DNA from: Tubulanus polymorphus
Lineage: Eukaryota > Animalia > Nemertea
Direction: 5' to 3'
Length of the DNA: 64,000 nucleotides
Assembly: GCF_964204645.1 (NCBI RefSeq)
Contig: NC_134033.1
Span: forward strand, 13,462,655-13,526,654
In this document: positions 1 through 39,023 of the stretch, one piece after another
Layout: every line of letters begins with the position of its first letter
How positions within the stretch are numbered: position 1 is the first letter of the stretch
Translations under genes and position numbers: made by a program
The notes under the pieces: generated by a model
What the model was told of the DNA's origin: nothing
The model's database searches: none
The model's input: only the letters and a program-made list of their open reading frames with translations

Positions 1-3000
1 CGAGGTAGACGAATCCGTTGTTAAGGTCGTATCGGTGCTCACCGAGGTCGATGTGTCTAACGTAGTTGATGTGTCAGTTGAGGATGAAGTAGACGAATCC
101 GTTGGTGATGTCGTCACGGTGCTCGCTGAGGTCGAAGTGTCTACCGTAGTTGATGTGTCAGTTGAGGATGAAGAAGACGAATCCGTTGGTGATGTCGTCA
201 CGGTGCTCGCCGAGGTCGAAGTGTCTACCGTAGTTGATGTGTCAGTTGAGGACGAAGTAGACGAATCCGTTGGTGATGTCGTCTCGGTGCTCGCCGATGT
301 TGATGTGTCCACCGTAGTGGAGGTGTCAGTCGAGGACGAAGTAGACGAATCCGTTGGTGATATCGTCTCGGTGCTCGACGAGGTCGATGTGTCTACCGTA
401 GTTGAGCTGACAGTCGAGGACGAAGTAGACAAATCCGTTGTTGAGGTCGTATCGGTACTCACCGAGGTCGATGTGTCTTCCGTAGAGGAGCTTACAGTCG
501 AGGATGAAGTAGACGAATCCGTTGGTGATATCGTATCGGTACTCGCCGAGGTCGATGTGTCTACCGTAGTGGAGCTGACAGTCGAGGATAAAGTAGACGA
601 ATCCGTTGGTGATGTCGTGTCGGTGCTCGCCGAGGTCGATGTGTCTACCGTAGTTGATGTGTCAGTCGAGGATGAAGTAGACGAATCCGTTGGAGATGTC
701 GTATCTGTGCTCACCGAGGTCGATGTGTCTACCGTAGTTGATGTGTCAGTCGAGGATGAAGTAGACGAATCCGTTGGTGATGTCGTATCGGTACTCGCCG
801 AGGTCGATGTGTCTACCGTAGTGGAGCTGACAGTGGAGGATGAAGTAGACGAATCCGTTGGTGATGTCGTCTCGGTGCTGGCCGATGTGGATGTGTCTAC
901 CGTAGTTGATATGTCTGTCGAGGATGAAGTTGACGAATCCGTTGGTGATGTCGTCTCGATGCTCGCCGATGTCGATGTGTCTACCGTAGTTGATGTGTCA
1001 GTCGAGGATGAAGTAGACGAATCCGTTGGTGATGTCGTCTCGGTGCTCGCCGATGTCGATGTGTCTACCGTAGTTGATGTGTCAGTCGAGGATGAAGTAG
1101 ACGAATCCGTTGGTGATGTCGTATCGGTGCTCACCGAGGTCGATGTGTCTACCGTAGTTGATGTGTCAGTCGAGGATGAAGTAGACGAATCCGTTGGTGA
1201 TGTCGTCTCAATGCTCGCCGATGTCGATGTGTCTACCGTAGTGGAGCTGACAGTGGAGGATGAAGTAGACGAATCCGTTGGTGATGTCGTCTCGATGCTC
1301 ACCGATGTCGATGTGTCTACCGTAGTTGATGTGTCAGTCGAGGATGAAGTAGACGAATCCGTTGGTGATGTCGTCTCGATGCTCGCCGATGTCGATGTGT
1401 CTACCGTAGTTGATGTGTCAGTCGAGGATGAAGTAGACGAATACGTTGGTGATGTCGTCTCGGTGCTCGCCGATGTCGATGTGTCTACCGTAGTTGATGT
1501 GTCAGTCGAGGATGAAGTAGACGAATCCGTTGGTGTTGTCGTCTCGGTACTCGCCGAGGTCGATGTGTCTACCGTAGAGAAGCTAACAGTCGAGGATGAA
1601 GTAGACGAATCCGTTGGTGATGTCGTGTCGGTACTCGCCGAGGTCGATGTGTCTACCGTAGTGGAGCTGACAGTGGAGGATGAAGTTGACGAATCCGTTG
1701 GTGATGTCGTCTCGGTGCTGGCCGATGTGGATGTGTCTACCGTAGTTGATATGTCTGTCGAGGATGAAGTAGACGAATCCGTTGGTGATGTCGTATCGGT
1801 ACTCGCCGAGGTCGATGTGTCTACCGTAGTGGAGCTGACAGTCGAGGATAAAGTAGACGAATCCGTTGGTGATGTCGTGTCGGTGCTCGCCGAGGTCGAT
1901 GTGTCTACCGTAGTGGAGGTGTCAGTCGAGGACGAAGTAGTCGAATCCGTTGGTGTTGTCGTTTCGGTGCTCACCGAGGTCGATGTGTCTACCGTAGTGG
2001 ATGTGTCAGTCGAGGTTGAAGTAGACGAATCCGTTGGTGATGTCGTATCGGTGCTCACCGAGGTCGATGTGTCTACCGTAGTTGATGTGTCAGTCGAGGA
2101 TGAAGTAGACGAATCCGTTGGTGATGTCGTATCGGTACTCGCCGAGGTCGATGTGTCTACCGTAGTGGAGCTGACAGTGGAGGATGAAGTAGACGAATCC
2201 GTTGGTGATGTCGTCTCGATGCTTACCGATGTCGATGTGTTTACCGTAGTTGATGTGTCAGTCGAGGATGAAGTAGACGAATCCGTTGGTGATGTCGTCT
2301 CGGTGCTCGCCGATGTGGATGTGTCTACCGTAGTTGATATGTCTGTCGAGGATGAAGTAGACGAATCCGTTGGTGATGTCGTCTCGATGCTCACCGATGT
2401 CGATGTGTCTACCGTAGTTGATGTGTCAGTCGAGGATGAAGTAGACGAATCCGTTGGTGATGTCGTCTCGGTGCTCGCCGATGTCGATGTGTCTACCGTA
2501 GTTGATGTGTCAGTCGAGGATGAAGTAGACGAATTCGTTGTTAAGGTCGTATCGGTGCTCGCCGATGTCGATGTGTCTAACGTAGTTGATGTGTCAGTTG
2601 AGGATGAAGTAGACGAATCCGTTGGTGATGTCGTCACGGTGCTCGCCGAGGTCGAAGTGTCTACCGTAGTTGATGTGTCAGTTGAGGATGAAGTAGACGA
2701 ATCCGTTGGTGATGTCGTCTCGGTGCTCGCCGATGTCGATGTGTCTACCGTAGAAGCGCTGACAGTCGAGGATGAAGTAGACGAATCCGTTGGTGATGTC
2801 GTCTCGGTGCTCGCCGATGTCGATGTGTCTACCGTAGTTGATATGTCTGTCGAGGATGAAGTAGACGAATCCGTTGGTGATGTCGTCTCGATGCTCGCCG
2901 ATGTCGATGTGTCTACCGTAGTTGATGTGTCAGTCGAGGATGAAGTAGACGAATCCGTTGGTGATGTCGTCACGGTGCTCGCCGATGTCGATGTATCTAC

Positions 3001-6000
3001 CGTAGAGGCGCTGACAGTCGAGGATGAAGTAGACGAATCCGTTGGTGATGACGTCACGGTGCTCGCCGAGGTCGATGTGTCTACCGTAGTGGAGGTGTCA
3101 GTCGAGGACGAAGTCGACGAATCCGTTGTAAAGGTCGTATCGGTGCTCACCGATGTCGATGTATCTATCGTAGTGGAGGTGTCAGTCGAGGATGAAGTAG
3201 ACGAATCCGTTGGTGATGTCGTATCGGTGCTCACCGAGGTCGATGTGTCTACCGTAGTTGATGTGTCAGTCGAGGATGAAGTAGACGAATCCGTTGGTGA
3301 TGTCGTCACGGTACTCGCCGAGGTCGATGTGTCTACCGTAGTGGAGGTGTCAGGCGAGGACGAAGACGACGAATCCGTTGTAAAGGTCGTATCGGTGCTC
3401 ACCGATGTCGATGTATCTATCGTAGTGGAGGTGTCAGTCGAGGATGAAGTAGACGAATCCGTTGGTGATGTCGTATCGGTACTCGCCGAGGTCGATGTGT
3501 CTACCGTAGTGGAGCTGACAGTGGAGGATGAAGTAGACGAATCCGTTGGTGATGTCGTCTCGATGCTCACCGATGTCGATGTGTCTACCGTAGTTGATGT
3601 GTCAGTCGAGGATGAAGTAGACGAATCCGTTGGTGATGTCGTCACGGTGCTCGCCGATATCGATGTGTCTACCGTAGTTGATGTGTCAGTCGAGGATGAA
3701 GTAGATGAATCCGTCGGTGTTGTCGTCACGGTGCTCGCCGAGGTCGAAGTGTCTACCGTAGTTGATGTGTCAGTTGAGGATGAAGTAGACGAATCCGTTG
3801 GTGATGTCGTATCGGTGCTCACCGAGGTCGATGTGTCTATCGTAGTGGAGGTGTCAGTCGAGGACGAGGTAGACGAATCCGTTGTTAAGGTCGTATCGGT
3901 GCTCGCCGAGGTCGATGTGTCTACCGTAGTTGATGTGTCAGTTGAGGATGAAGTAGACGAATCCGTTGGTGATGTCATCACGGTTCTCGCCGAGGTCGAA
4001 GTGTCTACCGTAGTTGATGTGTCAGTTGAGAATGAAGTAGACGAATCCGTTGGTGATGTCGTCTCGGTGCTCGCCGATGTCGATATGTCTACCGTAGAGG
4101 CGCTGACAGTCGAGGATGAAGTAGACGAATCCGTTGGTGATGTCGTCTCGGTGCTCGCCGATGTCGATGTGTCTACCGTAGTTGATATGTCTGTCGAGGA
4201 TGAAGTAGACGAATCCGTTGGTGATGTCGTCTCGGTGCTCGCCGATGTCGATGTGTCTACCGTAGTTGAGCTGACAGTCGAGGACGAAGTAGACAAATCC
4301 GTTGTTGAGGTCGTATCGGTACTCACCGAGGTCGATGTGTCTACCGTAGTGGAGGTGTCAGTCGAGGATGAAGTAGACGAATCCGTTGGTGATGTCGTCT
4401 CGGTGCTCGCCGATGTTGATGTGTCCACCGTAGTGGAGGTGTCAGTCGAGGACGAAGTAGACGAATCCGTTGGTGATGTCGTCTCGGTGCTCGACGAGGT
4501 CGATGTGTCTACCGTAGTTGAGCTGACAGTCGAGGACGAAGTAGACGAATCCGCTGTTGAGGTCGTATCGGTACTCACCGAGGTCGATGTGTCTACCGTA
4601 GTGGAGGTGTCAGTCGAGGATGAAGTAGACGAATCCGTTGGTGATGCCGTCACGGTACTCGCCGAGGTCGATGTGTCTACCGAAGAGGAGCTTACAGTCG
4701 AGGATGAAGTCGACGAATCCGTTGGTGTTGTCGTCTCAGTGCTCACCGAGGTCGATGTGTCTACCGTAGTTGATGTGTCAGTCGAGGATGAAGTAGACGA
4801 ATCCGTTGGTGATGTCGTCTCGGTGCTAGCCGATGTCGATGTGTCTACCGTAGTGGAGCTGACAGTCGAGGATGAAGTAGACGAATCCGTTGGTGATGTC
4901 GTCTCGGTACTCGCCGATGTTGATGTGTCCACCGTAGTGGAGGTTTCAGTCGAGGACGAAGTAGACGAATCCGTTGGTGATGTCGTATCGGTACTCGCCG
5001 AGGTCGATGTGTCTACCGTAGTGGAGCTGACAGTGGAGGAAGAAGTAGACGAATCCGTTGTTAAGGTCGTATCGGTACTCGCCGAGGTCGATGTGTCTAC
5101 CGTAGTGGAGCTGACAGTCGAGGATGAAGTAGACGAATCCGTTGGTGATGTCGTATCGGTACTCGCCGAGGTCGATGTGTCTACCGTAGTGGAGCTGACA
5201 GTGGAGGAAGAAGTAGACGAATCCGTTGTTAAGGTCGTATCGGTACTCGCCGAGGTCGATGTGTCTACCGTAGTGGAGCTGACAGTCGAGGAAGAAGTAG
5301 ACGAATCCGTTGTTAAGGTCGTATCGGTACTCGCCGAGGTCGATGTGTCTACCGTAGTGGAGCTGACAGTCGAGGATGAAGTAGACGAATCCGTTGGTGT
5401 TGTCGACTCGGTACTCACCGAGGTCGATGTGTCTACCGTAGTTGATGTGTCAGTCGAGGATGAAGTAGACGAATCCGTTGGTGATGTCGTCTCGGTGCTC
5501 GCCGATGTCGATGTGTCTACCGTAGTTGATGTGTCAGTCGAGGATGAAGTAGACGAATCCGTTGGTGATGTCGTCTCGATGCTCGCCGATGTCGATGTGT
5601 CTACCGTAGTTGATGTGTCAGTCGAGGATGAAGTAGACGAATCCGTTGGTGATGTCGTCTCGGTGCTCGCCGATGTCGATGTGTCTACCGTAGTTGATGT
5701 GTCAGTCGAGGATGAAGTAGACGAATCCGTTGGTGATGTCGTATCGGTGCTCACCGAGGTCGATGTGTCTATCGTAGTGGAGGTGTCAGTCGAGGACGTG
5801 GTAGACGAATCCGTTGTTAAGGTCGTATCGGTGCTCGCCGAGGTCGATGTGTCTACCGTAGTTGATGTGTCAGTCGAGGATGAAGTAGACGAATCCGTTG
5901 GTGATGTCGTCACGGTGCTCGCCGAGGTCGAAGTGTCTACCGTAGTTGATTTGTCAGTTGAGGATGAAGTAGACGAATCCGTTGGTGATGTCGTCTCGGT

Positions 6001-30000: not shown

Positions 30001-33000
30001 GTCTACCGTAGTTGATGTGTCAGTCGAGGATGAAGTAGACGAATCCGTTGGTGATGTCGTATCGGTGCTCGCCGAGGTCGATGTGTCTACCGTAGTGGAG
30101 GTGTCAGTCGGGGACGAAGTCGACGATACCGTTGGTGATGTCGTCTCGATGCTCGACGATGTAGATGTGTCTACCGTAGTAGAGGTGTCAGTCGTGGACG
30201 AAGTAGACGAATCCGTTGGTGATGTCGTCTCGATGCTCGACGATGTAGATGTCTCTACCGTAGTAGAGGTGTCAGTCGTGGACGAAGTAGACGAATCCGT
30301 TGGTGATGTCGTATCGGTACTCGCCGAGGTCGATGTGTCTACCGTAGTGGAGCTGACAGTCGAGGATGAAGTCGATGAATCCATCGGTGTTGTCGTCTCG
30401 GTGCTCGCCGAGGTCGATGTGTCTACCGTAGTGGAGCTGACAGTCGAGGAAGAAGTAGACGAATCCGTTGTTAAGGTCGTATCGGTACTCGCCGAGGTCG
30501 ATGTGTCTACCGTAGTGGAGCTGACAGTCGAGGAAGAAGTAGACGAATCCGTTGTTAAGGTCGTATCGGTACTCGCCGAGGTCGATGTGTCTACCGTAGT
30601 GGAGCTGACCGTCGAGGAAGAAGTAGAAGAATCCGTTTTTAAGGTCGTATCGGTACTCGCCGAGGTCGATGTGTCTACCGTAGTGGAGCTGACAGTCGTG
30701 GATGAAGTCGACGAATCCGTTGGTGTTGTCGTCTCGGTGCTCACCGAGGTCGATATGTCTACCGTAGTGGAGGTGTCAGTCGAGGACGAAGTAGACGAAT
30801 CCGTTGGTGATGTCGTCTCGGTGCTCGACGAGGTCGATGTGTCTACCGTAGTGGATATGTCAGTCGAGGAAGAAGTAGACGAATCCGTTGTTAAGGTCGT
30901 ATCGGTACTCGCCGAGGTCGATGTGTCTACCGTAGTGGAGCTGACAGTCGAGGATGAAGTCGACGAATCCGTTGGTGTTGACGTCTCGGTGCTCACCGAG
31001 GTCGATGTGTCTACCGTAGTGGAGCTGACAGTCGTGGATGAAGTCGACGAATCCGTTGGTGTTGTCGTCTCGGTGCTCACCGAGGTCGATATGTCTACCG
31101 TAGTGGAGGTGTCAGTCGAGGACGAAGTAGACGAATCCGTTGGTGATGTCGTCTCGGTGCTCGACGAGGTCGATGTGTCTACCGTAGTGGATATGTCAGT
31201 CGAGGAAGAAGTAGACGAATCCGTTGTTAAGGTCGTATCGGTACTCGCCGAGGTCGATGTGTCTACCGTAGTGGAGCTGACAGTCGAGGATGAAGTCGAC
31301 GAATCCGTTGGTGTTGACGTCTCGGTGCTCACCGAGGTCGATGTGTCTATCGCAGTGGATGTGTCAGTCGAGGATGCAGTAGACGAATCTGTTGGTGATG
31401 TCGTATCGGTACTCGCCGAGGTCGATGTGTCTACCGTAGTGGAGCTGACAGTCGAGGATGAAGTCGACGAATCCGTTGGTGTTGTCGTCGCGGTGCTCAC
31501 CGAGGTCGATGTGTCTACCGTAGTTGATGTGTCAGTCGAGGACGAAGTAGACGAATCCGTTGGTGATGTCGTATCGGTACTCGCCGAGGTCGATGTGTCT
31601 ACCGTATTGGAGCTGACAGTCGAGGACGAAGTAGACGAATCCGTTGGTGATGTCGTCTCGGTGCTCACCGAGGTCGATGTGTCTACCGTAGTGGAGGTAT
31701 CAGTCGAGGACGAAGTAGACGAATCCGTTGGTGATGTCGTCTCGGTGCTCACCGAGGTCGATGTGTCTACCGTAGTGGAGCTGACAGTCGAGGATGTAGT
31801 CGACGAATCCGTTGGTGATGTCGTATCGGTACTCGCCGAGGTCGATGTGTCTACCGTAGTGGAGCTGACAGTCGAGGATGAAGTCGACGAATCCGTTGGT
31901 GTTGTCGTCTCGGTGCTCACCGATGTCGATGTGTCTACCGTAGTTGATGTGACAGTCGAGGACGAAGTAGACGAATCCGTTGGTGATGTCGTCTCGGTGC
32001 TCACCGAGGTCGATGTGTCTACCGTAGTGGAGGTATCAGTCGAGGACGAAGTAGACGAATCCGTTGGTGTTGTCGTCTCGGTGCTCACCGTGGTCGATGT
32101 GTCTATCGTAGTTGATGTGTCAGTCGAGGATGCAGTAGACGAATCCGTTGGTGATGTCGTATCGGTACTCGCCGAGGTCGATGTGTCTACCGTAGTGGAG
32201 CTGACAGTCGAGGACGAAGTAGACGAATCCGTTGGTGATGTCGTCTCGGTGCTCACCGAGGTCGATGTGTCTACCGTAGTGGAGGTATCAGTCGAGGACG
32301 AAGTAGACGAATCCGTTGGTGATGTCGTCTCGGTGCTCACCGAGGTCGACGTGTCTACCGTAGTGGATGTGTCAGTCGAGGATGAAGTAGACGAATCCGT
32401 TGGTGATGTCGTATCGGTACTCGCCGATGTCGATGTGTCTACCGTAGTTGAGCTGACAGTCGAGGATGTAGTCGACGAATCCGTTGGTGATGTCGTATCG
32501 GTACCCGCCGAGGTCGATGTGTCTACCGTAGTGGAGCTGACAGTCGAGGATGAAGTCGACGAATCCGTTGGTGTTGTCGTCTCGGTGCTCACCGATGTCG
32601 ATGTGTCTACCGTAGTTGATGTGTCAGTCGAGGATGAAGTAGACGAATCCGTTGGTGATGTCGTATCGGTACTCGCCGAGGTCGATGTGTCTACCGTAGT
32701 GGAGCTGACAGTCGAGGATGAAGTCGACGAATCCGTTGGTGTTGTCGTCTCGGTGCTCACCGAGGTCGATGTGTCTACCGTAGTTGATGTGTCAGTCGAG
32801 GATGAAGTAGACGAATCCGTTGGTGATGTCGTATCGGAACTCGCCGAGGTCGATGTGTCTACCGTAGTGGAGCTGACAGTCGAGGACGAAGTAGACGAAT
32901 CCGTTGGTGATGTCGTCTCGGTGCTAACCGAGGTCGATGTGTCTACCGTAGTGGAGGTATCAGTCGAGGACGAAGTAGACGAATCCGTTGGTGATGTCGT

Positions 33001-35670
33001 CTCGGTGCTCACCGAGGTCGACGTGTCTAACGTAGTGGATGTGTCAGTCGAGGATGAAGTAGACGAATCCGTTGGTGATGTCGTATCGGTACTCGCCGAG
33101 GTCGATGTGTCTACCGTAGTGGGGCTGACAGTCGAGGACGAAGTAGACGAATCCGTTGGTGATGTCGTCTCGGTGCTCACCGAGGTCGATGTGTCTACCG
33201 TAGTGGAGGTATCAGTCGAGGACGAAGTAGACGAATCCGTTGGTGTTGTCGTCTCGGTGCTCACCGTGGTCGATGTGTCTATCGTAGTTGATGTGTCAGT
33301 CGAGGATGCAGTAGACGAATCCATTGGTGATGTCGTATCGGTACTCGCCGAGGTCGATGTGTCTACCGTAGTGGAGCTGACAGTCGAGGACGAAGTAGAC
33401 GAATCCGTTGGTGATGTCGTCTCGGTGCTCACCGAGGTCGATGTGTCTACCGTAGTGGAGGTATCAGTCGAGGACGAAGTAGACGAATCCGTTGGTGATG
33501 TCGTCTCGGTGCTCACCGAGGTCGACGTGTCTACCGTAGTGGATGTGTCAGTCGAGGATGAAGTAGACGAATCCGTTGGTGATGTCGTATCGGTACTCGC
33601 CGAGGTCGATGTGTCTATCGTAGTTGAGCTGACAGTCGAGGATGTAGTCGACGAATCCGTTGGTGATGTCGTATCGGTACCCACCGAGGTCGATGTGTCT
33701 ACCGTAGTGGAGCTGACAGTCGAGGATGAAGTCGACGAATCCGTTGGTGTTGTCGTCTCGGTGCTCACCGATGTCGATGTGTCTACCGTAGTTGATGTGT
33801 CAGTCGAGGATGAAGTAGACGAATCCGTTGGTGATGTCGTATCGGTACTCGCCGAGGTCGATGTGTCTACCGTAGTGGAGCTGACAGTCGAGGATGAAGT
33901 CGACGAATCCGTTGGTGTTGTCGTCTCGGTGCTCACCGAGGTCGATGTGTCTACCGTAGTTGATGTGTCAGTCGAGGATGAAGTAGACGAATCCGTTGGT
34001 GATGTCGTATCGGTACTCGCCGAGGTCGATGTGTCTACCGTAGTGGAGCTGACAGTCGAGGACGAAGTAGACGAATCCGTTGGTGATGTCGTCTCGGTGC
34101 TCACCGAGGTCGATGTGTCTTCCGTAGTGGAGGTATCAGTCGAGGACGAAGTAGACGAATCCGTTGGTGATGTCGTCTCGGTGCTCACCGAGGTCGACGT
34201 GTCTACCGTAGTGGATGTGTCAGTCGAGGATGAAGTAGACGAATCCGTTGGTGATGTCGTATCGGTACTCGCCGAGGTCGATGTGTCTATCGTAGTTGAG
34301 CTGACAGTCGAGGATGTAGTCGACGAATCCGTTGGTGATGTCGTATCGGTACTCGCCGAGGTCGATGTGTCTACCGTAGTGGAGCTGACAGTCGAGGATG
34401 AAGTCGACGAATCCGTTGGTGTTGTCGTCTCGGTGCTCACCAATGTCGATGTGTCTACCGTAGTTGATGTGTCAGTCGAGGATGAAGTAGACGAATCAGT
34501 TGGTGTTGTCGTATCGGTACTCGCCGAGGTCGATGTGTCTACCGTAGTGGAGCTGACAGTCGAGGACAAAGTAGACGAATCCGTTGGTGATGTCGTCTCG
34601 GTGCTCACCGAGGTCGATGTGTCTACCGTAGTGGAGGTATCAGTCGAGGACGAAGTAGACGAATCCGTTGGTGATGTCGTCTCGGTGCTCACCGAGGTCG
34701 ACGTGTCTACCGTAGTGGATGTGTCAGTCGAGGATGAAGTAGACGAATCCGTTGGTGATGTCGTATCGGTACTCGCCGAGGTCGATGTGTCTATCGTAGT
34801 TGAGCTGACAGTCGAGGATGTAGTCGACGAATCCGTTGGTGATGTCGTATCGGTACTCGCCGAGGTCGATGTGTCTACCGTAGTGGAGCTGACAGTCGAG
34901 GATGAAGTCGACGAATCCGTTGGTGTTGTCGTCTCGGTGCTCACCGATGTCGATGTGTCTACCGTAGTTGATGTGACAGTCGAGGACGAAGTAGACGAAT
35001 CCGTTGGTGATGTCGTCTCGGTGCTCGCGGATGTTGATGTGTCCACCGTGGTGGAGGTGTCAGTCGGGGACGAAGTAAACGAATCCGTTGGTGATGTCGT
35101 CTCGGTGCTCGCCGATGTTGATGTGTCTACCGTAGTGGAGGTATCAGTCGAGGACGAAGTAGACGAATCCGTTGGTGTTGTCGTCTCGGTGCTCACCGTG
35201 GTCGATGTGTCTACCGTAGTGGATGTGTCAGTCGTGGATGAAGTAGACGAATCCGTTGGTGACGTCGTATCGGTACTCGCCGAGGTCGATGTGTCTACCG
35301 TAGTGGAGCTGACAGTCGAGGATGAAGTCGAAGAATCCGTTGGTGATGTCGTATCGGTACTCGCCGAGGTCGATGTGTCTACCGTAGTTGATGTGTCAGT
35401 CGAGGATGAAGTAGACGAATCCGTTGGTGATGTCGACTCGATGCTCGCCGAAGTCGATGTGTCTACCGTAGTTGAGCTGACAGTCGAGGATGAAGTCGAC
35501 GAATCCGTTGGTGTTGTCGTCTCGGTGCTCGCCGAGGTCGATGTGTCTACGGTAGTTGAGCTGATAGTCCAGGATGAAGTAGCATAATCTGTTGGTGAGG
35601 TGCTCTCTGTGTTCGCCGAAGATTTTGTGTGCACCGTCGAGGTACTGACAGATGTGGATGTGTCAGTCGT
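1..35670 (-). repeat. Coding tandem array B: 84-bp unit, about 420-425 copies in window
   Basis: Plus-strand unit gacgaatccgttggtgatgtcgtctcggtgctcgccgatgtcgatgtgtctaccgtagttgatgtgtcagtcgaggatgaagta recurs every 84 bp. The rare indels are multiples of 3. Confidence 0.98.
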
Positions 35671-35778
35671 TGATTCGCTTGAAATTTCCGCTCTAGTGGT
35701 TTCGTTCAGGCAATATGCTATCCATATTACTATTAATGTTACCCTCAGGTTCTTATTGGTTTGCACGTATGTTCCCAT
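1..35778 (-). CDS. Giant mucin-like Ser/Thr-rich glycoprotein, gene B (5' part; signal peptide plus >=35.7 kb repeat exon, runs off the left edge, >=11,926 aa)
   Basis: ATG at 35778-35776 in ACAATGG context, with an in-frame TAA at 35790-35788 upstream. Manual translation gives MGTYVQTNKNLRVTLIVIWIAYCLNETTRAEISSESTTDTSTSVST, which runs directly into the 28-aa S/T repeats. The plus-strand shadow ORFs (35, 18902, 35600) are all in one register, so there is no frameshift. The ORF track lists no stop-terminated minus ORF here, consistent with a frame open to base 1. Confidence 0.88.
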   Translation of the reverse strand, partial: MGTYVQTNKNLRVTLIVIWIAYCLNETTRAEISSESTTDTSTSVSTSTVHTKSSANTESTSPTDYATSSWTISSTTVDTSTSASTETTTPTDSSTSSSTVSSTTVDTSTSASIESTSPTDSSTSSSTDTSTTVDTSTSASTDTTSPTDSSTSSSTVSSTTVDTSTSASTDTTSPTDSSTSSTTDTSTTVDTSTTVSTETTTPTDSSTSSSTDTSTTVDTSTSASTETTSPTDSFTSSPTDTSTTVDTSTSASTETTSPTDSSTSSSTVTSTTVDTSTSVSTETTTPTDSSTSSSTVSSTTVDTSTSASTDTTSPTDSSTTSSTVSSTTIDTSTSASTDTTSPTDSSTSSSTDTSTTVDTSTSVSTETTSPTDSSTSSSTDTSTTVDTSTSVSTETTSPTDSSTLSSTVSSTTVDTSTSASTDTTTPTDSSTSSSTDTSTTVDTSTLVSTETTTPTDSSTSSSTVSSTTVDTSTSASTDTTSPTDSSTTSSTVSSTTIDTSTSASTDTTSPTDSSTSSSTDTSTTVDTSTSVSTETTSPTDSSTSSSTDTSTTEDTSTSVSTETTSPTDSSTSSSTVSSTTVDTSTSASTDTTSPTDSSTSSSTDTSTTVDTSTSVSTETTTPTDSSTSSSTVSSTTVDTSTSASTDTTSPTDSSTSSSTDTSTTVDTSTSVSTETTTPTDSSTSSSTVSSTTVDTSTSVGTDTTSPTDSSTTSSTVSSTTIDTSTSASTDTTSPTDSSTSSSTDTSTTVDTSTSVSTETTSPTDSSTSSSTDTSTTVDTSTSVSTETTSPTDSSTSSSTVSSTTVDTSTSASTDTTSPMDSSTASSTDTSTTIDTSTTVSTETTTPTDSSTSSSTDTSTTVDTSTSVSTETTSPTDSSTSSSTVSPTTVDTSTSASTDTTSPTDSSTSSSTDTSTTLDTSTSVSTETTSPTDSSTSSSTDTSTTVDTSTSVSTETTSPTDSSTSSSTVSSTTVDTSTSASSDTTSPTDSSTSSSTDTSTTVDTSTSVSTETTTPTDSSTSSSTVSSTTVDTSTSASTDTTSPTDSSTSSSTDTSTTVDTSTSVSTETTTPTDSSTSSSTVSSTTVDTSTSAGTDTTSPTDSSTTSSTVSSTTVDTSTSASTDTTSPTDSSTSSSTDTSTTVDTSTSVSTETTSPTDSSTSSSTDTSTTVDTSTSVSTETTSPTDSSTSSSTVSSTTVDTSTSASTDTTSPTDSSTASSTDTSTTIDTSTTVSTETTTPTDSSTSSSTDTSTTVDTSTSVSTETTSPTDSSTSSSTVTSTTVDTSTSVSTETTTPTDSSTSSSTVSSTTVDTSTSASTDTTSPTDSSTTSSTVSSTTVDTSTSVSTETTSPTDSSTSSSTDTSTTVDTSTSVSTETTSPTDSSTSSSTVSSNTVDTSTSASTDTTSPTDSSTSSSTDTSTTVDTSTSVSTATTTPTDSSTSSSTVSSTTVDTSTSASTDTTSPTDSSTASSTDTSTAIDTSTSVSTETSTPTDSSTSSSTVSSTTVDTSTSASTDTTLTTDSSTSSSTDISTTVDTSTSSSTETTSPTDSSTSSSTDTSTTVDISTSVSTETTTPTDSSTSSTTVSSTTVDTSTSVSTETSTPTDSSTSSSTVSSTTVDTSTSASTDTTLTTDSSTSSSTDISTTVDTSTSSSTETTSPTDSSTSSSTDTSTTVDISTSVSTETTTPTDSSTSSTTVSSTTVDTSTSASTDTTLKTDSSTSSSTVSSTTVDTSTSASTDTTLTTDSSTSSSTVSSTTVDTSTSASTDTTLTTDSSTSSSTVSSTTVDTSTSASTETTTPMDSSTSSSTVSSTTVDTSTSASTDTTSPTDSSTSSTTDTSTTVETSTSSSIETTSPTDSSTSSTTDTSTTVDTSTSSSIETTSPTVSSTSSPTDTSTTVDTSTSASTDTTSPTDSSTSSSTDTSTTVDTSTSLSTETTTPTDSSTSSSTVSSSTVDTSTSASTDTTSPTDSSTSSSTVSSTTVDTSTSASTDTTSPTDSSTSSSTVSSSTVDTSTSVSTDTTSTTDSSTSSSTETSTTVDTSTSASIETTSPTDSSTSSSTDTSTTVDTSTSASTDTTSPTDSSISSSTVSSTTVDTSTSASIETTSPTDSSTSSSTDTSTTVDTSTSVSTETTTPTHSSTSSSTVSSSTVDTSTSASTDTTSPTDSSTSSSTDTSTTIDTSTSVSTETTTPTDSSTLSSIVSSTTVDTSTSASTDTTLTTDLSTTSSTVSSNSVDTSTSSSTVTTSPTDSSTSSSTDTTTVDTSTSVSTETTSATDSSTSSSTDTSTTVDTSTSASTDTTSPTDSSTSSTTDTSTTVDTSTSSSIETTSATDSSTSSPTVSSTTVDTSTSVSTDTTSTTDSSTSSSTETSTTVDTSTSASTETTSPTDSSTSSSTDTSTKVDTSTSASTDTTSPTDSSTSSSTVSSTTVDTSTSASTETTSPTDLSTSSSTDTSTTVDTSTSVSTETTTPTDSSTSSSTVSSSTVDTSTSASTDTTTPTDSSTTSSTVSASTVDTSTSVSTETTTPTDSSTSSSTDTTTTVDTSTSASTETTSPTDLSTSSSTDTSTTVDTSTSVSTETTTPTDSSTSSSTVSSTTIDTSTSASTDTTFTTDSSTSSSTDTSTTIDTSTSVSTDTTLTTDLSTSSSTDTSTTVDTSTSASTWTTSPTDSSTSSSTVSSTTVDTSTSASTETTSPTDSSTSSSTDTSTTVDTSTSVSTETTSPTDSSTSSSTVSSTTVDTSTSASTDTTSPTDSSSTSSTVSSTTIDTSTSASTDTTSPTDSSTSSTTDTSTTVDTSTTVSTETTTPTDSSTSSSTDTSTTVDTSTSVSTETTTPTASSTSSSTVSSTTVDTSTSASTDTTSPTDSSTSSSTDTSTTVDTSTSVTTETTTPTDSSTSSSTVSSSTVDTSTSASTDTTTPTDSSTTSSTVSSTTVDTSTSANTDTTSPTDSSTLSSTVSSTTVDTSTSSSTETKSATDSSTSSSTDTSTTVDTSTSASAETTSPTDSSTSSSTDTSTTVDTSTSVSTETTTPTDSSTLSSTVSSTTVDTSTSASTDTTLTTDLSTTSSTVSSNSVDTSTSSSTVTTSPTDSSTSSSTDTTTVDTSTSVSTETTSATDSSTSSSTDTSTTVDTSTSASTDTTSPTDSSTSSSTDTSTTVDTSTSSSIETTSATDSSTSSPTVSSTTVDTSTSVSTDTTSTTDSSTSSSTETSTTVDTSTSASTETTSSTDSSTSSSTDTSTKVDTSTSASTDTTSPTDSSTSSSTVSSTTVDTSTSASTETTSPTDSSTSSSTDTSTTVDTSTSVSTETTTPTDSSTSSSTVSSSTVDTSTSASTDTTTPTDSSTTSSTVSASTVDTSTSVSTETTTPTDSSTSSSTDTTTTVDTSTSASTDTTSPTDSSTSSSTVSSTTVDTSSSASTDTTSPTDSSTSSSTVSASTVDTSTSSSTEKTSATDSSTSSSTDTSTTVDTSTSASTETTSPTDSSTSSSTDTSTTVDTSTSASTETTSPTDSFTSSPTDTSTTVDTSTSASTETTSPTDSSTSSSTVTSTTVDTSTSVSTETTTPTDSSTSSSTVSSTTVDTSTSASTDTTSPTDSSTTSSTVSSTTIDTSTSASTDTTSPTDSSTSSSTDTSTTVDTSTSVSTETTSPTDSSTSSSTDTSTTVDTSTSVSTETTSPTDSSTSSSTVSSTTVDTSTSASTDTTSPTDSSTSSSTDTSTTVDTSTSVSTETTSPTDSSTSSSTDTSTTVDTSTSASTWTTSPTDSSTSSSTVSSTTVDTSTSASTETTSPTDSSTSSSTDTSTTVDTSTSASTDTTLTTDSSTSSSTVSSTTIDTSTSVSTETTSPTDSSTSSSTVSASTVDTSTSASTETTSPTDSSTSSSTDTSTTVDTSTSVSTDTTLTTDSSTSSSTDTSTTVDTSTSASTWTTSPTDSSTSSSTVSSTTVDTSTSASTETTSPTDSSTSSSTDTSTTVDTSTSVSTETTTPTDSSTSSSTVSSTTVDTSTSASTDTTSPTDSSTSSSTVSSTTVDTSTSASTDTTSPTDSSTSSSTDTSTTVDTSTSVSTETTTPTDSSTSSSTVSSTTVDTSTSASTDTTSPTDSSTSSTTDTSTTVDTSTTVSTETTTPTDSSTSSSTDTSTTVDTSTSVSTETTTPTASSTSSSTVSSTTVDTSTSASTDTTSSTDSSTSSSTVSSSTVDTSTSASTDTTTPTDSSTTSSTVSSTTVDTSTSANTDTTSPTDSSTLSSTVSSTTVDTSTSSSTETKSATDSSTSSSTDTSTTVDTSTSASAETTSPTDSSTSSSTDTSTTVDTSTSVSTETTTPTDSSTLSSTVSSTTVDTSTSASTDTTLTTDLSTTSSTVSSNSVDTSTSSSTVTTSPTDSSTSSSTDTTTVDTSTSVSTETTSATDSSTLSSTDTSTTVDTSTSASTDTTSPTDSSTSSTTDTSTTVDTSTSSSIETTSATDSSTSSPTVSSTTVDTSTSVSTDTTSTTDSSTSSSTETSTTVETSTSASTETTSPTDSSTSSSTDTSTKVDTSTSASTDTTSPTDSSTSSSTVSSTTVDTSTSASTETTSPTDSSTSSSTDTSTTVDTSTSVSTETTTPTDSSTSSSTVSSSTVDTSTSASTDTTTPTDSSTTSSTVSASTVDTSTSVSTETTTPTDSSTSSSTDTTTTVDTSTSASTDTTSPTDSSTSSSTVSSTTVDTSSSASTDTTSPTDSSTSSSTVSASTVDTSTSSSTEKTSATDSSTSSSTDTSTTVDTSTSASTETTSPTDSSTSSSTDTSTTVDTSTSASTETTSPTDSFTSSPTDTSTTVDTSTSASTETTSPTDSSTSSSTVTSTTVDTSTSVSTETTTPTDSSTSSSTVSSTTVDTSTSASTDTTSPTDSSTTSSTVSSTTIDTLTSASTDTTSPTDSSTSSSTDTSTTVDTSTSVSTETTSPTDSSTSSSTDTSTTVDTSTSVSTETTSPTDSSTSSSTVSSTTVDTSTSASTDTTSPTDSSTSSSTDTSTTVDTSTSVSTETTTPTDSSTSSSTVSSTTVDTSTSASTDTTSPTDSSTTSSTVSSTTIDTSTSASTDTTSPTDSSTSSSTDTSTTVDTSTSVSTETTSPTDSSTSSSTDTSTTVDTSTSVSTETTSPTDSSTSSSTVSSTTVDTSTSASTDTTSPTDSSTSSSTDTSTTVDTSTSVSTETTSPTDSSTSSSTVSSTTVDTSTSASTDTTSPTDSSTTSSTVSSTTIDTSTSASTDTTSPTDSSTSSSTDTSTTVDTSTSVSTETTSPTDSSTSSSTDTSTTVDTSTSVSTETTSPTDSSTSSSTVSSTTVDTSTSASTDTTSPTDSSTSSSTDTSTTVDTSTSVSTETTSPTDSSTSSSTDTSTTVDTSTSASTWTTSPTDSSTSSSTVSSTTVDTSTSASTETTSPTDSSTSSSTDTSTTVDTSTSVSTETTSPTDSSTSSSTVSASTVDTSTSASTETTSPTDSSTSSSTDTSTTVDTSTSASTDTTLTTDSSTSSSTDTSTTVDTSTSASTWTTSPTDSSTSSSTVSSTTVDTSTSASTETTSPTDSSTSSSTDTSTTVDTSTSVSTETTTPTDSSTSSSTVSSTTVDTSTSASTDTTSPTDSSTSSTTDTSTTVDTSTTVSTETTTPTDSSTSSSTDTYTTVDTSTSVSTETTTPTASFTSSPTDTSTTVDTSTSASTETTSPTDSSTSSSTVTSTTVDTSTSVSTETTTPTDSSTSSSTVSSTTVDTSTSASTDTTSPTDSSTTSSTVSSTTIDTSTSASTDTTSPTDSSTSSSTDTSTTVDTSTSVSTETTSPTDSSTSSSTDTSTTVDTSTSVSTETTSPTDSSTSSSTVSSTTVDTSTSASTDTTSPTDSSTSSSTDTSTTVDTSTSVSTETTTPTDSSTSSSTVSSTTVDTSTSASTDTTSPTDSSTTSSTVSSTTIDTSTSASTDTTSPTDSSTSSSTDTSTTVDTSTSVSTETTSPTDSSTSSSTDTSTTVDTSTSVSTETTSPTDSSTSSSTVSSTTVDTSTSASTDTTSPTDSSTSSSTDTSSTVDTSTSVSTETTSPTDSSTSSSTDTSTTVDTSTSASTWTTSPTDSSTSSSTVSSTTVDTSTSASTETTSPTDSSTSSSTDTSTTVDTSTSVSTETTSPTDSSTSSSTVSASTVDTSTSASTETTSPTDSSTSSSTDTSTTVDTSTSVSTDTTLTTDSSTSSSTDTSTTVDTSTSASTWTTSPTDSSTSSSTVSSTTVDTSTSASTETTSPTDSSTSSSTVSASTVDTSTSASTETTSPTDSSTSSSTDTSTTVDTSTSVSTETTTPTSSSTVSSTTVDTSTSAGTDTTSPTDSSTTSSTVSSTTIDTSTSASTDTTSPTDSSTSSSTDTSTTVDTSTTVSTETTSPTDSSTSSSTDTSTTVDTSTSVSTETTSPMDSSTSSSTVSSTTVDTSTSASTDTTSPTDSSTSSSTDTSTTVDTSTSVSTATTTPTDSSTSSSTVSSTTVDTSNSASTDTTSSTDSSTASSTDTSTTIDTSTSVSTETSTPTDSSTSSSTVSFTTVDTSNSASTDTTLTTDSSTSSSTDISTTVDTSTSSSTETTSPTDSSTSSSTDTSTTVDISTSVSTETTTPTDSSTSSTTVSSTTVDTSTSASTDTTLTTDSSTSSSTVSSTTVDTSTSASTDTTLTTDSSTSSSTVSSTTVDTSTSASTDTTLTTDSSTSSSTVSSTTVDTSTSASTETTTPMDSSTSSSTASSTTVDTSTSASTDTTSPTDSSTSSTTDTSTTVETSTSSSIETTSPTDSSTSSTTDTSTTVDTSTSSSIETTSPTVSSTSSPTDTSTTVDTSTSASTDTTSPTDSSTSSSTDTSTTVDTSTSLSTETTTPTDSSTSSSTVSSSTVDTSTSASTDTTSPTDSSTSSSTVSSTTVDTSTSASTDTTSPTDSSTSSSTVSSSTVDTSTSVSTDTTSTTDSSTSSSTETSTTVDTSTSASTETTSPTDSSTSSSTDTSTTVDTSTSASTDTTSPTDSSTSSSTVSSTTVDTSTSASTETTSPTDSSTSSSTDTSTTVDTSTSVSTETTTPTHSSTSSSTVSSSTVDTSTSASTDTTTPTDSSTTSSTVSSTTVHTSTSASTDTTSPTDSSTSSTTDTSTTVDTSTSSSIETTSATDSSTSSPTVSSTTVDTSTSASTDTTSPTDSSTSSLTVSSTTVDTSTSASTDTTFTTDSSTSSSTVSSTTVDTSSSASTDTTSPTDSSTASSTDTSTTIDTSTSASTDTTFTTDSSTSSSTDTSTTIDTSTSVSTDTTLTTDSSTSSSTDTSTTVDTSTSASTWTTSPTDSSTSSSTVSSTTVDTSTSASTETTSPTDSSTSSSTDTSTTVDTSTSVSTETTSPTDSSTSSSTVSASTVDTSTSASTETTSPTDSSTSSSTDTSTTVDTSTSVSTDTTLTTDSSTSSSTDTSTTVDTSTSASTWTTSPTDSSTSSSTVSSTTVDTSTSASTETTSPTDSSTSSSTDTSTTVDTSTSVSTETTTPTDSSTSSSTVSSTTVDTSTSASTDTTSPTDSSTSSSTDTSTTVDTSTSVSTETTTPTDSSTSSSTVSSTTVDTSTSASTDTTSPTDSSTSSTTDTSTTVDTSTTVSTETTTPTDSSTSSSTDTSTTVDTSTSVSTETTTPTDSSTSSSTVSSSTVDTSTSANTTLTTDLSTTSSTVSSNSVDTSTSSSTVTTSPTDSSTSSSTDTTTVDTSTSVSTETTSATDSSTSSSTDTSTTVDTSTSASTDTTSPTDSSTSSTTDTSTTVDTTTSSSIETTSATDSSTPSPTVSSTTVDTSTSVSTDTTSTTDSSTSSSTETSTTVDTSTSASTETTSPTDSSTSSSTDISTKVDTSTSASTDTTSPTDSSTSSSTVSSTTVDTSTSASTETTSPTDSSTASSTDTSTTIDTSTSASTDTTFTTDSSTSSSTDTSTTIDTSTSVSTDTTLTTDSSTSSSTDTSTTVDTSTSASTWTTSPTDSSTSSSTVSSTTVDTSTSASTETTSPTDSSTSSSTDTSTTVDTSTSVSTETTSPTDSSTSSSTVSASTVDTSTSASTETTSLTESSTSSSTVSASTVDTSTSASTETTSPTDSSTSSSSDTSTTVDTSTSASTVTTSPTDSSTSSSTDTSTTVDTSTSASTETTTPTDSSTSSSTVSSTTVDTSTSASTETTSPTDSSTSSSTDTSTTVDTSTSVSTETTTPMDSSTSSSTVSSSTVDTSTSASTVTTSPTDSSTSSSTVSASTVDTSTSASTVTTSPTDSSTSSSTDTSTTVDTSTLASIETTSPTDSSTSSSTDTSTTIDTSTSVSTDTTFTTDSSTSSSTDTSTTVDTSTSASTDTTSPTDSSTSSSTVSASTVDTSTSASTETTSPTDSSTSSSTDTSTTVDTSTSVSTETTTPTSSSTVSSTTVDTSTSSSTETTSPTDSSTSSSTDTSTTVDKSTSTSTETTSPTDSSTSSSTDTSTTVDTSTSASTDTTLTTDSSTSSSTDTSTTIDTSTSVSTDTTSPTDSSTSSSTDISTTVDTSTSASSETTSPTDSSTSSSTDTSTTVDTSTSASTETTSPTDSSTSSSTDTSTTVDTSTSASTETTSPTDSSTSSSTDISTTVDTSTSASSETTSPTDSSTSSSTDTSTTVDTSTSVSTETTTPTDSSTSSSTVSSSTVDTSTSASTDTTTPTDSSTTSSTVSSTTVDTSTSANTDTTSPTDSSTLSSTVSSTTVDTSTSSSTETKSATDSSTSSSTDTSTTVDTSTSASAETTSPTDSSTSSSTDTSTTVDTSTSASTDTTSPTDSSTSYSTDTSTTVDTSTSASTDTTSPTDSSTSSSTDTSTTVDTSTSVSTETTTPTDSSTSSSTVSSTTVDTSTSASTDTTSPTDSSTASSTDTSTTIDTSTSVSTKTSTPTDSSTSSSTVSSTTVDTSTSASTDTTLTTDSSTSSSTDISTTVDTSTSSSTETTSPTDSSTSSTTDTSTTVETSTSSSIETTSPTDSSTSSTTDTSTTVDTSTSSSIETTSPTDSSTSSPTDTSTTVDTSTSASTDTTSPTDSSTSSSTVSSSTADTSTSASTDTTTPTDSSTTSTTVSSTTVDTSTSASTDTTSPTDSSTSSSTDTSTTVDTSTSVSTDTTSTTDSSTSSSTETSTTVDTSTSASTETTSPTDSSTSSSTDTSTTVDTSISASTDTTLTTDSSTSSSTDTSTTIDTSTSVSTDTTSPTDSSTSSSTDTSTTVDTSTSASTETTSPTDSSTSSSTDISTTVDTSTSASTETTSPTDPSTSSSTDTSTTVDTSTSASTETTSPTDSSTSSSTDTSTTVDTSTLASIETTSPTDSSTSSSTDISTTVDTSTSASTETTSPTDSSTSSSTVSASTVDTSTSASTETTSPTDSSTSSSTDKSTTVDTSTSASTVTTSPTDSSTSSSTDTSTTVDTSTSASTDTTLTTDSSTTSSTDTSTTIDTSTSVSTDTTSPTDSSTSSSTDTSTTVDTSTSASTETTSPTDSSTSSTTDTSTTVETSTSSSIETTSPTDSSTSSTTDTSTTVDTSTSSSIETTSPTDSSTSSPTDTSTTVDTSTSASTDTTSPTDSSTSSSTVSSSTADTSTSASTDTTTPTDSSTTSTTVSSTTVDTSTSASTDTTSPTDSSTSSSTVSSTTVDTSTSASTDTTPPTDSSTSSSTVSSSTVDTSTSVSTDTTSTTDSSTSSSTETSTTVDTSTSASTETTSPTDSSTSSSTDTSTTVDTSISASTDTTLTTDSSTSSSTDTSTTIDTSTSVSTDTTSPTDSSTSSSTDTSTTVDTSTSASTETTSPTDSSTSSSTDISTTVDTSTSASTETTSPTDSSTSSSTDTSTTVDTSTSASTETTSPTDSSTSSSTDTSTTVDTSTLASIETTSPTDSSTSSSTDISTTVDTSTSASTETTSPTDSSTSSSTVSASTVDTSTSASTETTSPTDSSTSSSTDKSTTVDTSTSASTVTTSPTDSSTSSSTDTSTTVDTSTSASTDTTLTTDSSTTSSTDTSTTIDTSTSVSTDTTSPTDSSTSSSTDTSTTVDTSTSASTETTSPTDSSTSSSTDTSTTVDTSTSASIETTSPTDSSTSSSTDTSTTVDTSTSASTETTSPTDSSTSSSTDTSTTVDTSTSVSTESTTPTDSSTSSSTVSSTTVDTSTSASTDTTLTTDSSTSSSTVSSTTVDTSTSASTDTTLTTDSSTSSSTVSSTTVDTSTSASTDTTSPTDSSTSSSTVSSTTVDTSTSASTDTTLTTDSSTSSSTVSSTTVDTSTSASTDTTSPTDSSTSSSTETSTTVDTSTSASTETTSPTDSSTSSSTVSSTTVDTSTSASTETTSPTDSSTSSSTDTSTTVDTSTSVSTETTTPTDSSTSSSTVSSSSVDTSTSASTVTASPTDSSTSSSTDTSTTVDTSTSVSTDTTSTADSSTSSSTVSSTTVDTSTSSSTETTSPTDSSTSSSTDTSTTVDTSTSASTETTSPTDSSTSSSTDTSTTVDTSTSVSTDTTSTTDLSTSSSTVSSTTVDTSTSASTETTSPTDSSTSSSTDISTTVDTSTSASTETTSPTDSSTSSSTVSASTVDISTSASTETTSPTDSSTSFSTDTSTTVDTSTSARTVMTSPTDSSTSSSTDTSTTVDTSTSASTDTTLTTDSSTSSSTDTSTTIDTSTSVSTDTTSPTDSSTSSSTDTSTTVDTSTSASTVTTTPTDSSTSSSTDTSTTVDTSISASTVTTSPTDSSTSSSTDTSTTVDTSTSVSIETTSPTDSSTSSSTVSSTTVDTSTSASTDTTSPTDSSTSSSTDTSTTIDTSTSVSTDTTFTTDSSSSSSPDTSTTVDTSTSASTVTTSPTDSSTSSSTDTSTTVDTSTSVSTDTTSPTDSSTSSSTDTSTTIDTSTSVSTDTTFTTDSSTSSSTDTSTTVDTSTSASTVTSSPTDSSTSSSTVSASTVDTSTSASTVTTSPTDSSTSSSTDTSTTVDTSTSASIETTSPTDSSTSSSTDISTTVDTSTSASTETTSPTDSSTSSSTVSASTVDTSTSASTETTSPTDSSTSSSTDTSTTVDTSTSASTVTTSPTDSSTSSSTDTSTTLDTSTSASTDTTLTTNSSTSSSTDTSTTVDTSTSASTETTSPTDSSTSSSTDTSTTVDTSTSVSIETTSPTDSSTSSSTDISTTVDTSTSASTETTSPTDSSTSSSTDTSTTVNTSTSVSIETTSPTDSSTSSSTVSSTTVDTSTSASTDTTSPTDSSTSSSTDTSTTVDTSTSVSTDTTSPTDSSTSTSTDTSTTVDTSTSVSTETTTPTDSTTSSSTDTSTTVDTSTSASTDTTSPTDSSTLSSTVSSTTVDTSTSASTDTTSPTDSSTSSSTDISTTVDTSTSASTETTSPTDSSTSSSTVSSTTVDTSTSASTDTTSPTDSSTSSSTVSFSTVDTSTSASTETTTPTDSSTSSSTDTSTTVDTSTSASTETTSPTYSSTSSSTDTSTTVDTSTSASIETTSPTDSSTSSSTDTSTTVDTSTSVSIETTSPTDSSTSSSTVSSTTVDTSTSASIETTSPTDSSTSSSTDTSTTVDTSTSVSTDTTSPTDSSTSSSTDTSTTVDTSTSASTETTSPTDSSTSSSTDTSTTVDTSTSASIETTSPTDSSTSSSTDISTTVDTSTSASTETTSPTDSSTSSSTVSSTTVDTSTSASTDTTSPTDSSTSSSTDTSTTVDTSTSVSTDTTSPTDSSTSSSTDTSTTVDTSTSASTDTTSPTDSSTLSSTVSSTTVDTSTSASTDTISPTDSSTSSSTVSSSTEDTSTSVSTDTTSTTDLSTSSSTVSSTTVDTSTSSSTETISPTDSSTSSSTDTSTTVDTSTSASTETTSPTDSSTSSSTDTSTTVDTSTSASTVTTSPTDSSSSSSTDTSTTVDTSTSASTVTTSPTDSSTSSSTDTSTTLDTSTSVSTDTTLTTDSSTS
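35689..35778 (-). other. Signal peptide of gene B (about 30 aa)
   Basis: Basic n-region (K,R), hydrophobic core VTLIVIWIAYCL, polar c-region ending T-R-A|E-I-S-S, with small residues at -3 and -1. Confidence 0.7.
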
Positions 35779-35808
35779 TGTCTTTAATTATTTGATGAGG
35801 TTTGCCTG
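35779..35808 (-). other. Probable splice acceptor (TTCAG|G, exon start 35805) and 27-nt 5'UTR portion of the gene B giant exon
   Basis: Minus strand reads ...GGATTCAG|GCAAACCTCATCAAATAATTAAAGACA-ATG. Candidate upstream donors are CAG|GTAAGA (exon end 36116) and CAG|GTAATG (exon end 36127). Confidence 0.4.
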
Positions 35809-37399
35809 AATCCTTTTTGAATAACATCACATTTAATCTCTCTGAGAATGATGCAAACCTTTCCGTAGTATGCGTCAAGAACTCGTAGATGATACCGATA
35901 TTTGTCTAACTGTTTAAGCCCTTTTGTTTCTTTTCTCCTGTGGATTATCAGAGTAGATTAGCTTCAAACCCACTGAAGCTATTGAAAAAACTAAAACTCA
36001 TTTTTTAAGTAAACATGACAATTTTGGTTCATCTTTTTACGTCTTCATATTTTCAAGAATATGAAATTATTGTTTGACCATTTCATTGTGATTACCCAGT
36101 AAATCATTTTCTTACCTGACCATTACCTGGTTGTTTGTATTTCAGATTGGCTCTAAACTACAATTCGTGGAAACTGTTGAGTTACCCTTCACGTAAAATA
36201 AATACGTTATTCCTTTCGTTAATTGAATTTGGTTATTGATTATTCCTTGTCGTGATGTCCCAGGACGAAGTTATAGTATATAATTTAACGCGCCTTTAAT
36301 AAGCTACCTACTATGTATGGGAGATTTACGCGGGTTTCGTTGACATATTTCTTTTAAAAATATGGGTGTAACCCAAAATTACTGAACCGTGTAGTAAAAA
36401 ATCTGATTTCCTTTTATTCTTCATATTATGACGAACATAAGCGGCAATGTTAAATATGTGTTGCGTGCCTTTGAACAAATACTATCCGGTTTTTTGGGCG
36501 TTTCACGTATACCGGTATTTTGTCAATGAACATTTCATTATACGTAAAGGTTAATATTACGTAAAGATATGAAATATAATGACTATGTGCATCAATATAT
36601 ATCAATGATACAACACAAAATTTAACATGTGTATATATTCCTAAAGAAATCGTATTTTTTATAACCGCGTTCCGGGCTGGAGCTTGACAAACAAACTGAA
36701 CATATCGTGAACCATCTGTCATCATTAAATCCCCAACCGTTAACATCTTTATTCAACAGTATATATTTCTCTTTACCGTCGTTATTTTCTGTGTTATACT
36801 GAAATAATACTGTCGGAAATAACTGAAACGAAACTTAGCTCATTCATTCGTTGGGTTGGAAAACGACCGGTTGAAGGATCAATTTAAGTAGCACCCAGAT
36901 TTGAAACTATCCTGATTTATAATATTGAATGTCAGTGAAAAAACCGAAACGATCGAAATTCACAAGTCATAGAACAAGATTTATTGTGAAACGATCTCAA
37001 AAGAAATATGTATACATTATTTACGTTCAGTATGAAATTTATTTTTCCTACAATGTCACGACGACAAAATGTACGAATACATTTCCATGACCTGATTCCC
37101 TATAGCGAGAGACAATAGTTCTCAATGCGTGTCTAAGTTATGCCATCTTTTTCGTCATAATAAATTATTTTCGTATTCAGAACTGTTTAAGAGCAAAAGA
37201 TCTTAGAATACTACCGTGTAGCTTACTTTAAAATAGGTTGCCCATGCGGAGATCTACATTAATACACTTGCTTCTGAATTTAGCATGGTCACCTTACCAC
37301 ACACTTTAACAACCATTAGAATACCGCCGTAGTTATATTCAGTTCCCATAAATGTGTGTCTGTTTCTTTTTACGTAACAAAATTTCATTTTTCAAAGCA

Positions 37400-38767: not shown

Positions 38768-39023
<256 letters not shown>

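Follow-up and report, generated by a model that had tools for sequence, protein, structure and literature searches.

The 64,000-nucleotide stretch of DNA analysed here, referred to as the window, lies at C9:13,462,655-13,526,654 in the genome assembly (268 Mb, 77 contigs) of the palaeonemertean ribbon worm Tubulanus polymorphus, C9 being the contig of the window, and it holds parts of two neighbouring minus-strand genes, A and B, whose first coding exons consist of exceptionally long Ser/Thr-rich tandem repeats. Coordinates are those of the window unless a contig is named, negative numbers denoting DNA to its left. In gene A, a minus-strand frame is open from position 35787 to base 1, which corresponds to 11,929 codons in the window translation, with its first ATG at 35778, and this frame runs on in the adjoining DNA to -33998, that is 33,999 nt left of the window. 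Counted from ATG to TAG it comprises, as assembled, 23,259 sense codons or 69,777 nt without a single stop, and a GTTAGT donor at -33997 closes the exon. There are no N bases in the window and no N runs across the arrays, adjoining DNA included. A first-pass annotation of the window had described the uninterrupted frame from the ATG at 35778 to the window edge, had proposed a very large coding exon uniting signal peptide and repeat array, and had pointed to open-ended frame translation and to the left flank as the places to look for the exon end and for SEA, EGF and transmembrane exons. These expectations were borne out: the visible 11,926 codons contain no stop and the full exon is twice as long, translation with open ends leaves the gene A sense frame without a stop over its whole length, a signal-peptide-like start lies in the same exon, and the left flank yields the donor followed by exons for SEA-like, Cys/EGF-like, membrane helix and tail segments.

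Repeat arrays, start regions and public annotation

Gene B lies 5.9 kb upstream of gene A on the same strand and has the same exon layout, with a giant exon that extends from an ATG at 82306 to 43682 (12,875 codons, 38.6 kb) and a donor at 43684/43683. In both genes the terminal TAG sits within the GTTAGT donor, one codon past the junction, and the most probable end of the giant exon is one base beyond the final complete codon ahead of this TAG. Eight small exons, here called the cassette, come after it, and the giant frame makes up only part of each gene. The two genes stay homologous for 2.2 kb downstream of the giant exon. Their arrays are about 90% identical, which is below the identity within either array; their 3' cassettes are 98-99% identical, and the 81-nt intron 1 is identical.

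Both giant exons are built of one 84-nt tandem unit encoding 28 residues with the consensus SPTDSSTSSSTDTSTTVDTSTSASTETT. The gene A array counts about 826 units, 816 of them in register and covering 98.2% of the coding sequence, plus 10 more of 72-87 nt. Ser and Thr make up 73% of the unit, Asp and Glu 12% and Pro 3%, and the gene A peptide core of 2.27 MDa carries 17,041 Ser and Thr residues together with a strong net negative charge. Like the repeat domains of mucins, this is a long Ser/Thr-rich tandem-repeat domain within one large exon, with a Pro content that is low for a Pro/Thr/Ser-rich (PTS) domain.

The ATG of gene A stands in the context ACAATGG, with an in-frame TAA three codons upstream, and the start is conserved in paralogue B. 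Judged by hydropathy only, the N-terminus MGTYVQTNKNLR-VTLIVIWIAYCL-NETTRA/EISS is built like a signal peptide, with a charged, a hydrophobic and a small-residue part, and its charged n-region, 12-residue hydrophobic core and TRA/E site are likewise conserved in both genes. Ser/Thr-rich sequence begins about 5 residues past the likely cleavage site, while the first in-register unit of gene A starts at residue 61. Further upstream, two splice-like sites are conserved ahead of the ATGs of A and B with divergent sequence between them, the gene B counterpart lying at 82.4-82.7 kb, which suggests a short intron in the 5' untranslated region (5'UTR), in which case the giant exon would be the second one in the transcript.

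The giant exon is hidden from public annotation, in line with the first-pass annotation, which had supposed that gene predictors would probably mask it or call it on the wrong strand. The only public model, XP_074658466.1 (uncharacterized protein LOC141911364, 546 aa), begins at an internal Met of the giant exon, 155 codons short of its end, and keeps just these last codons of it; the model is its own cluster representative. No public protein of 5,500-17,500 aa, the lengths covered by the search, matches the first 400 residues of gene A. A protein core of 2.3 MDa, which is probably a major component of the worm's surface, stands in RefSeq as a 546-residue stub, and many recent invertebrate genomes assembled from long reads are likely to have giant repeat exons reduced in a similar way.

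Table 1. Features of genes A and B within the window, with the evidence for each.
Feature	Position	Strand	Evidence
Gene A giant coding exon, in-window part (codons 1-11,926 of 23,259)	1..35778	-	0 stops; 84-nt units in register; stop depletion versus shuffles; in-frame length variants only
Gene A start codon and signal-peptide-like segment, 32 residues, likely TRA/E cleavage site	35683..35778 (ATG 35778-35776)	-	Hydropathy; start conserved in gene B
Possible short 5'UTR intron, gene A	35841..36116	-	CAG/GTAAG donor-like 36116/36115; TTCTCAG/AG acceptor-like 35842/35841; A/B upstream alignment
Gene B giant exon, in-window part	43684..64000	-	Open frame; stop depletion; 84-nt units
Gene B exon 2, SEA-like N-terminal half (PFSVKINRSW...SREFDVFEHIARHA)	43602-43481	-	AG/GT borders; public model junctions; SEA profile E=2e-4
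Gene B exon 3, strand leading into G/S site	43383-43322	-	AG/GT borders; A copy; public model junctions
Gene B exon 4, starts NG/SVIYQYIVEY (SEA-type autoproteolysis motif), rest of module	43248-43058	-	AG/GT borders; A copy; public model
Gene B exon 5, Cys-rich module and first two thirds of EGF-like pattern	42974-42779	-	AG/GT borders; public model; similarity to Cys module of SEA gene; weak EGF matches
Gene B exon 6, EGF-like end, membrane helix VIAISLGAVFGVLLIAIIFTVIIIF, RRRKKR stop-transfer run	42638-42465	-	TM_ErbB1 E=3e-4, below cut-off; AlphaFold2 helix
Gene B exons 7-9, cytoplasmic tail	42385-42271, 42100-41879, 41804-41715 (TAG 41717-41715)	-	Translations match XP_074658466.1 tail

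Maintenance of the open frame and integrity of the arrays

The open frame is maintained by selection and not by chance. When the observed substitutions were shuffled among sites of equal codon position and consensus base, 56 ± 7 stops were expected in gene A and 66 ± 7 in gene B, and none is observed in either, the counts being cells and not independent events. The consensus unit allows 252 single changes, of which 74 leave the amino acid unchanged, 169 alter it and 9 create a stop; the codon differences actually observed comprise 2,173 synonymous and 2,553 nonsynonymous ones and no stop. Length-variant units, 10 in gene A and 39 in gene B (about 7-8 distinct kinds), all differ by multiples of 3.

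The sense frame of gene A has no stops and the other frames have 552-1,892, apart from the antisense frame that shares the wobble position of the sense frame, in which A has 9 stops, B has 10, and open runs reach 11,150 codons. Stops in this frame are possible only opposite sense Tyr, His or Gln, and all 9 in gene A stand opposite Tyr, so that the shared wobble position together with the rarity of Tyr explains why it is nearly open. Mismatch rates rise from 0.036 and 0.062 at codon positions 1 and 2 to 0.119 at position 3, and this excess was rejected as strand evidence because the near-open antisense frame shares the same wobble position, which leaves it unable to separate the strands. What identifies the minus strand as coding, as read from the sequence, is the count of 0 versus 9 stops, the conserved ATG in good context, the signal-peptide-like start and the spliced cassette on the same strand.

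The internal evidence on the assembly of the array is reassuring. Repeat units average 89% pairwise identity with 390 distinct nucleotide variants and no strong higher-order period, and no exact internal repeat in the arrays reaches 2 kb, with exact repeats up to 1.5-2 kb present. In a self-comparison of the array by blastn with 3-kb chunks as queries, the best off-diagonal identity of the 3-kb blocks was 91-98% in the window part and 91-99.9% overall. Genome-wide, a 17-mer of the repeat unit has 1,053 matches, and since 1,004 of them fall in genes A and B, the genome contains neither a further giant array nor a haplotig copy.

Membrane cassette and juxtamembrane module

The eight small exons have canonical AG/GT borders in both gene copies. 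They were read and searched one by one, the public protein XP_074658466.1 being the sole spliced sequence used, and because this RefSeq model employs exactly these exon junctions, in gene A, the cassette structure is independently supported. The EGF-like pattern completed by exon 6 reads C-x4-C-x5-C-x10-C-x-C-x8-C. Behind the SEA-like and EGF-like modules a single 25-residue hydrophobic helix is followed by RRRKKR, the arrangement of a type I membrane anchor, and then by a cytoplasmic tail of about 140 residues. Pfam searches on the cassette exons and the public model returned only sub-threshold EGF and membrane-helix matches, and in an AlphaFold2 model of XP_074658466.1 computed without an alignment (mean predicted local distance difference test score 38.7) the only confident segment was a helix at residues 366-403.

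For the juxtamembrane module, seven exon peptides of the same genome that match Pfam SEA served to build a profile, which was run against 2,527 six-frame open reading frame fragments from 75 kb of non-array flanks. Its top two matches were the exon 2 fragments of gene B (E=2e-4) and gene A (E=8e-4), with the next best at 0.28, so that this sensitive route points to SEA homology by transitive evidence and for the N-terminal half only. At the exon 3/4 junction both genes carry LSNG/SVIYQYIVEY, a sequence motif resembling the G/SVVV-like site, and the Cys module of A and B resembles the modules of a SEA-carrying gene at C9:2.52 Mb. The module is likely a divergent SEA-like one. Compared by phmmer with 1.84 billion protein representatives, exon 4 matched nothing beyond the public model of the worm itself and one chance hit, and an ESM Atlas search with the same exon gave scores <0.9 to unrelated families and was uninformative. 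Neither the phmmer search with exon 4 nor searches of PDB sequences revealed relatedness of A and B to vertebrate SEA-type mucin genes.

A 76%-similar version of the A/B unit occurs at C9:2.52-2.53 Mb, adjoining SEA exons. This other mucin-like gene (C9:2,519,143-2,529,310, minus strand) contains modules recurring about every 3.9 kb in the order GSTVSSTSGTT-type array, few 28-residue units of the A/B type, SEA exons and Cys module, where the SEA exons show a sub-threshold Pfam match and a GSVTVDF site. Its layout is similar to that of MUC16, with tandem SEA modules alternating with PTS and Cys modules, whereas genes A and B differ from the MUC16 type by combining a single juxtamembrane module and one enormous array in place of many SEA repeats. 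Small arrays of the 84-nt unit itself (0.6-2.1 kb, 86-91% identity) lie on another chromosome at C4:598,033-600,149 and C4:1,509,163-1,517,562, and could represent additional members of the family, or exons.

The interval that separates gene B from gene A contains an (AT)n microsatellite of 126 copies at 38768-39019 and an interspersed element of about 260 bp at 37921-38280. The latter has more than 40 copies with 81-87% identity on many contigs, matches partly in inverted orientation too, and looks like a miniature inverted-repeat transposable element or a short interspersed nuclear element. About 20 kb downstream of gene A, a 610-codon open frame was noted on the minus strand from -56548 to -54719.

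Interpretation and comparison with known systems

We consider it probable that A and B are membrane-tethered mucin-like genes, in which a signal peptide and the repeat array share one exon and are followed by the SEA-like module, the Cys/EGF-like modules, the membrane helix and the tail. The gene A product would then enter the secretory pathway, its Ser/Thr array would become densely O-glycosylated, and the mature protein would be a type I membrane protein displayed as an acidic cell-surface bottle-brush of roughly 5-6 μm, comparable to the length of a cilium. An O-glycosylated gene A rod extended at 0.2-0.35 nm per residue would span 4.7-8.1 μm, and the micrometre length that the first-pass annotation had estimated from 0.25 nm per residue becomes, for the full 23,259 residues, 5.8 μm. 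In the airways of vertebrates, tethered mucins build a periciliary brush, and nemerteans, whose epidermis is ciliated throughout, move by gliding on mucus. The role we think most likely is that the brush, if expressed there, forms a glycocalyx or periciliary layer on the ciliated epithelium of the worm, which is covered by mucus. The SEA-like module could let the rod detach under force, and a secreted form may be produced by retention of intron 1, which is possible because the TAG lies inside the donor.

Several observations weigh against this interpretation. With only 3% Pro and 12% Asp and Glu, the array is atypical for PTS domains; its O-glycosylation is an assumption, and the label mucin is drawn from composition only. 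Pfam SEA (PF01390) was unmatched exon by exon, in the genome scan at the locus and on the spliced public model. Exons 2, 4 and 5 and that model, compared with PDB sequences, gave nothing significant, and the single-sequence AlphaFold2 model is too poor for a test of the SEA fold. Finally, to the left of the window a 10.2-kb block of the array occurs twice at 99.87% identity, which reflects either a real or an assembly duplication.

This block bears on the reading in which the exon is real and was over-expanded or mis-joined in the assembly, the true allele being shorter and still tens of kb long. Tandem arrays are error-prone in assembly, and exact repeats of up to 1.5-2 kb add to the concern; the mean unit identity of 89%, the 390 variants and the lack of exact repeats of 2 kb speak for a faithful array, as do a frame open through every junction, the absence of N runs, and a genome in which genes A and B account for 1,004 of the 1,053 pattern matches and no second large array or haplotig occurs, so that we give over-expansion only a small chance. 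Far less credible still is a non-coding satellite or dead gene that stays open only because its unit lacks stops. The antisense frame, with 9 stops in 69.8 kb, does demonstrate that repeats alone can give very long open reading frames, but that frame owes its openness to the wobble position it shares with the sense frame and to the rarity of Tyr, whereas the complete lack of stops in two arrays that diverged independently, where 56-66 would be expected, indels that are all in frame, a synonymous excess, a conserved ATG and signal-peptide-like start at the head of the frame and the spliced membrane cassette behind it make this explanation extremely improbable.

Two further alternatives accept the protein and differ on its nature. 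Its main product could be a secreted giant mucin made by retention of intron 1 and ending at the TAG in the donor of both paralogues; the conserved position of this TAG and the identity of the following 81-nt intron between A and B agree with it, and ribbon worms release copious mucus (PMC6410017). Chance alone often places a stop inside a donor consensus, however, and the cassette exons, intact in A as well as in B, are spliced in the RefSeq model; we regard secretion as the main fate as unlikely. The array could also be part of a matrix or tube-building protein, acidic, rich in Ser, Thr and Asp and possibly phosphorylated, in place of an O-glycosylated mucin domain. Tubulanids live in self-secreted tubes, and the array, with 12.4% Asp and Glu, 3% Pro, 402 S-x-E and 813 S-x-D motifs, would suit such a protein, but the order of signal, Ser/Thr array, SEA-like, EGF-like and membrane helix segments is that of membrane mucins, and related 28-residue units adjoin Pfam-SEA exons elsewhere in the genome, which leaves a matrix or tube protein rather improbable. 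We retain membrane-tethered mucin-like genes as the preferred interpretation of A and B.

As for size, the first-pass annotation had taken the exons of TTN (about 17 kb) and MUC16 (about 22 kb) as the largest human coding exons. This figure has been overtaken, as the T2T-CHM13 assembly contains PTS exons of 39,267 bp in MUC3B, 32,428 bp in MUC12 and 15,870 bp in MUC3A (PMC9578598), and a 2026 pangenome preprint reports human MUC12 proteins of 4,677-23,080 aa, calling the MUC12 exon the largest in the human genome, and a total exon of 27.3 kb for GRIN2B (PMC13345508). Like the exons of TTN, MUC16 and GRIN2B, that of worm gene A is a single exon far above the usual 150 nt; it differs in being 2.5-4 times longer and built entirely of one 84-nt unit. 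With 23,259 codons, it is level with or marginally above the longest MUC12 allele and stands at the top of the known range, not far outside it. Our literature searches found no report of a larger coding exon, although such searches cannot prove absence. That gene A holds the longest uninterrupted coding exon in any animal reference assembly and that A and B are, in addition, an independently evolved, non-vertebrate SEA-type membrane mucin forming a tethered, cilium-length brush of about 5 μm on the ciliated epithelium with which the worm glides over mucus is a combined claim we hold to be doubtful. Single exons of about 70 kb would appear to be tolerated by animal transcription and splicing in two distant lineages, and a size of this order bears on exon definition and mRNA export.

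The closest counterpart is the human MUC3A/MUC3B/MUC12/MUC17 cluster at 7q22. In both cases tandem head-to-tail paralogues each carry one giant Ser/Thr repeat exon, small exons then encode a SEA module with a G/SV site (SEA-like in the worm), EGF-like modules, one membrane helix and a tail, the giant exons are comparable in order of size, and the arrays were truncated in public sequences, in the human case by short-read-era references. Unlike in the human genes, where the signal peptide occupies a small first exon, that of the worm lies within the giant exon; the worm repeat is acidic and Pro-poor, there is no detectable sequence homology, Pfam SEA is unmatched, and the host is a nemertean. 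SEA-type membrane mucins have been stated to arise in vertebrates (PMC9578598), and paralogues with a giant repeat exon and a SEA-like/EGF-like/membrane cassette would place in a nemertean a layout thought to be a vertebrate invention. In architecture the worm locus closely parallels the 7q22 cluster, in sequence it does not, and it points either to convergence or to an older origin from which the SEA modules have diverged.

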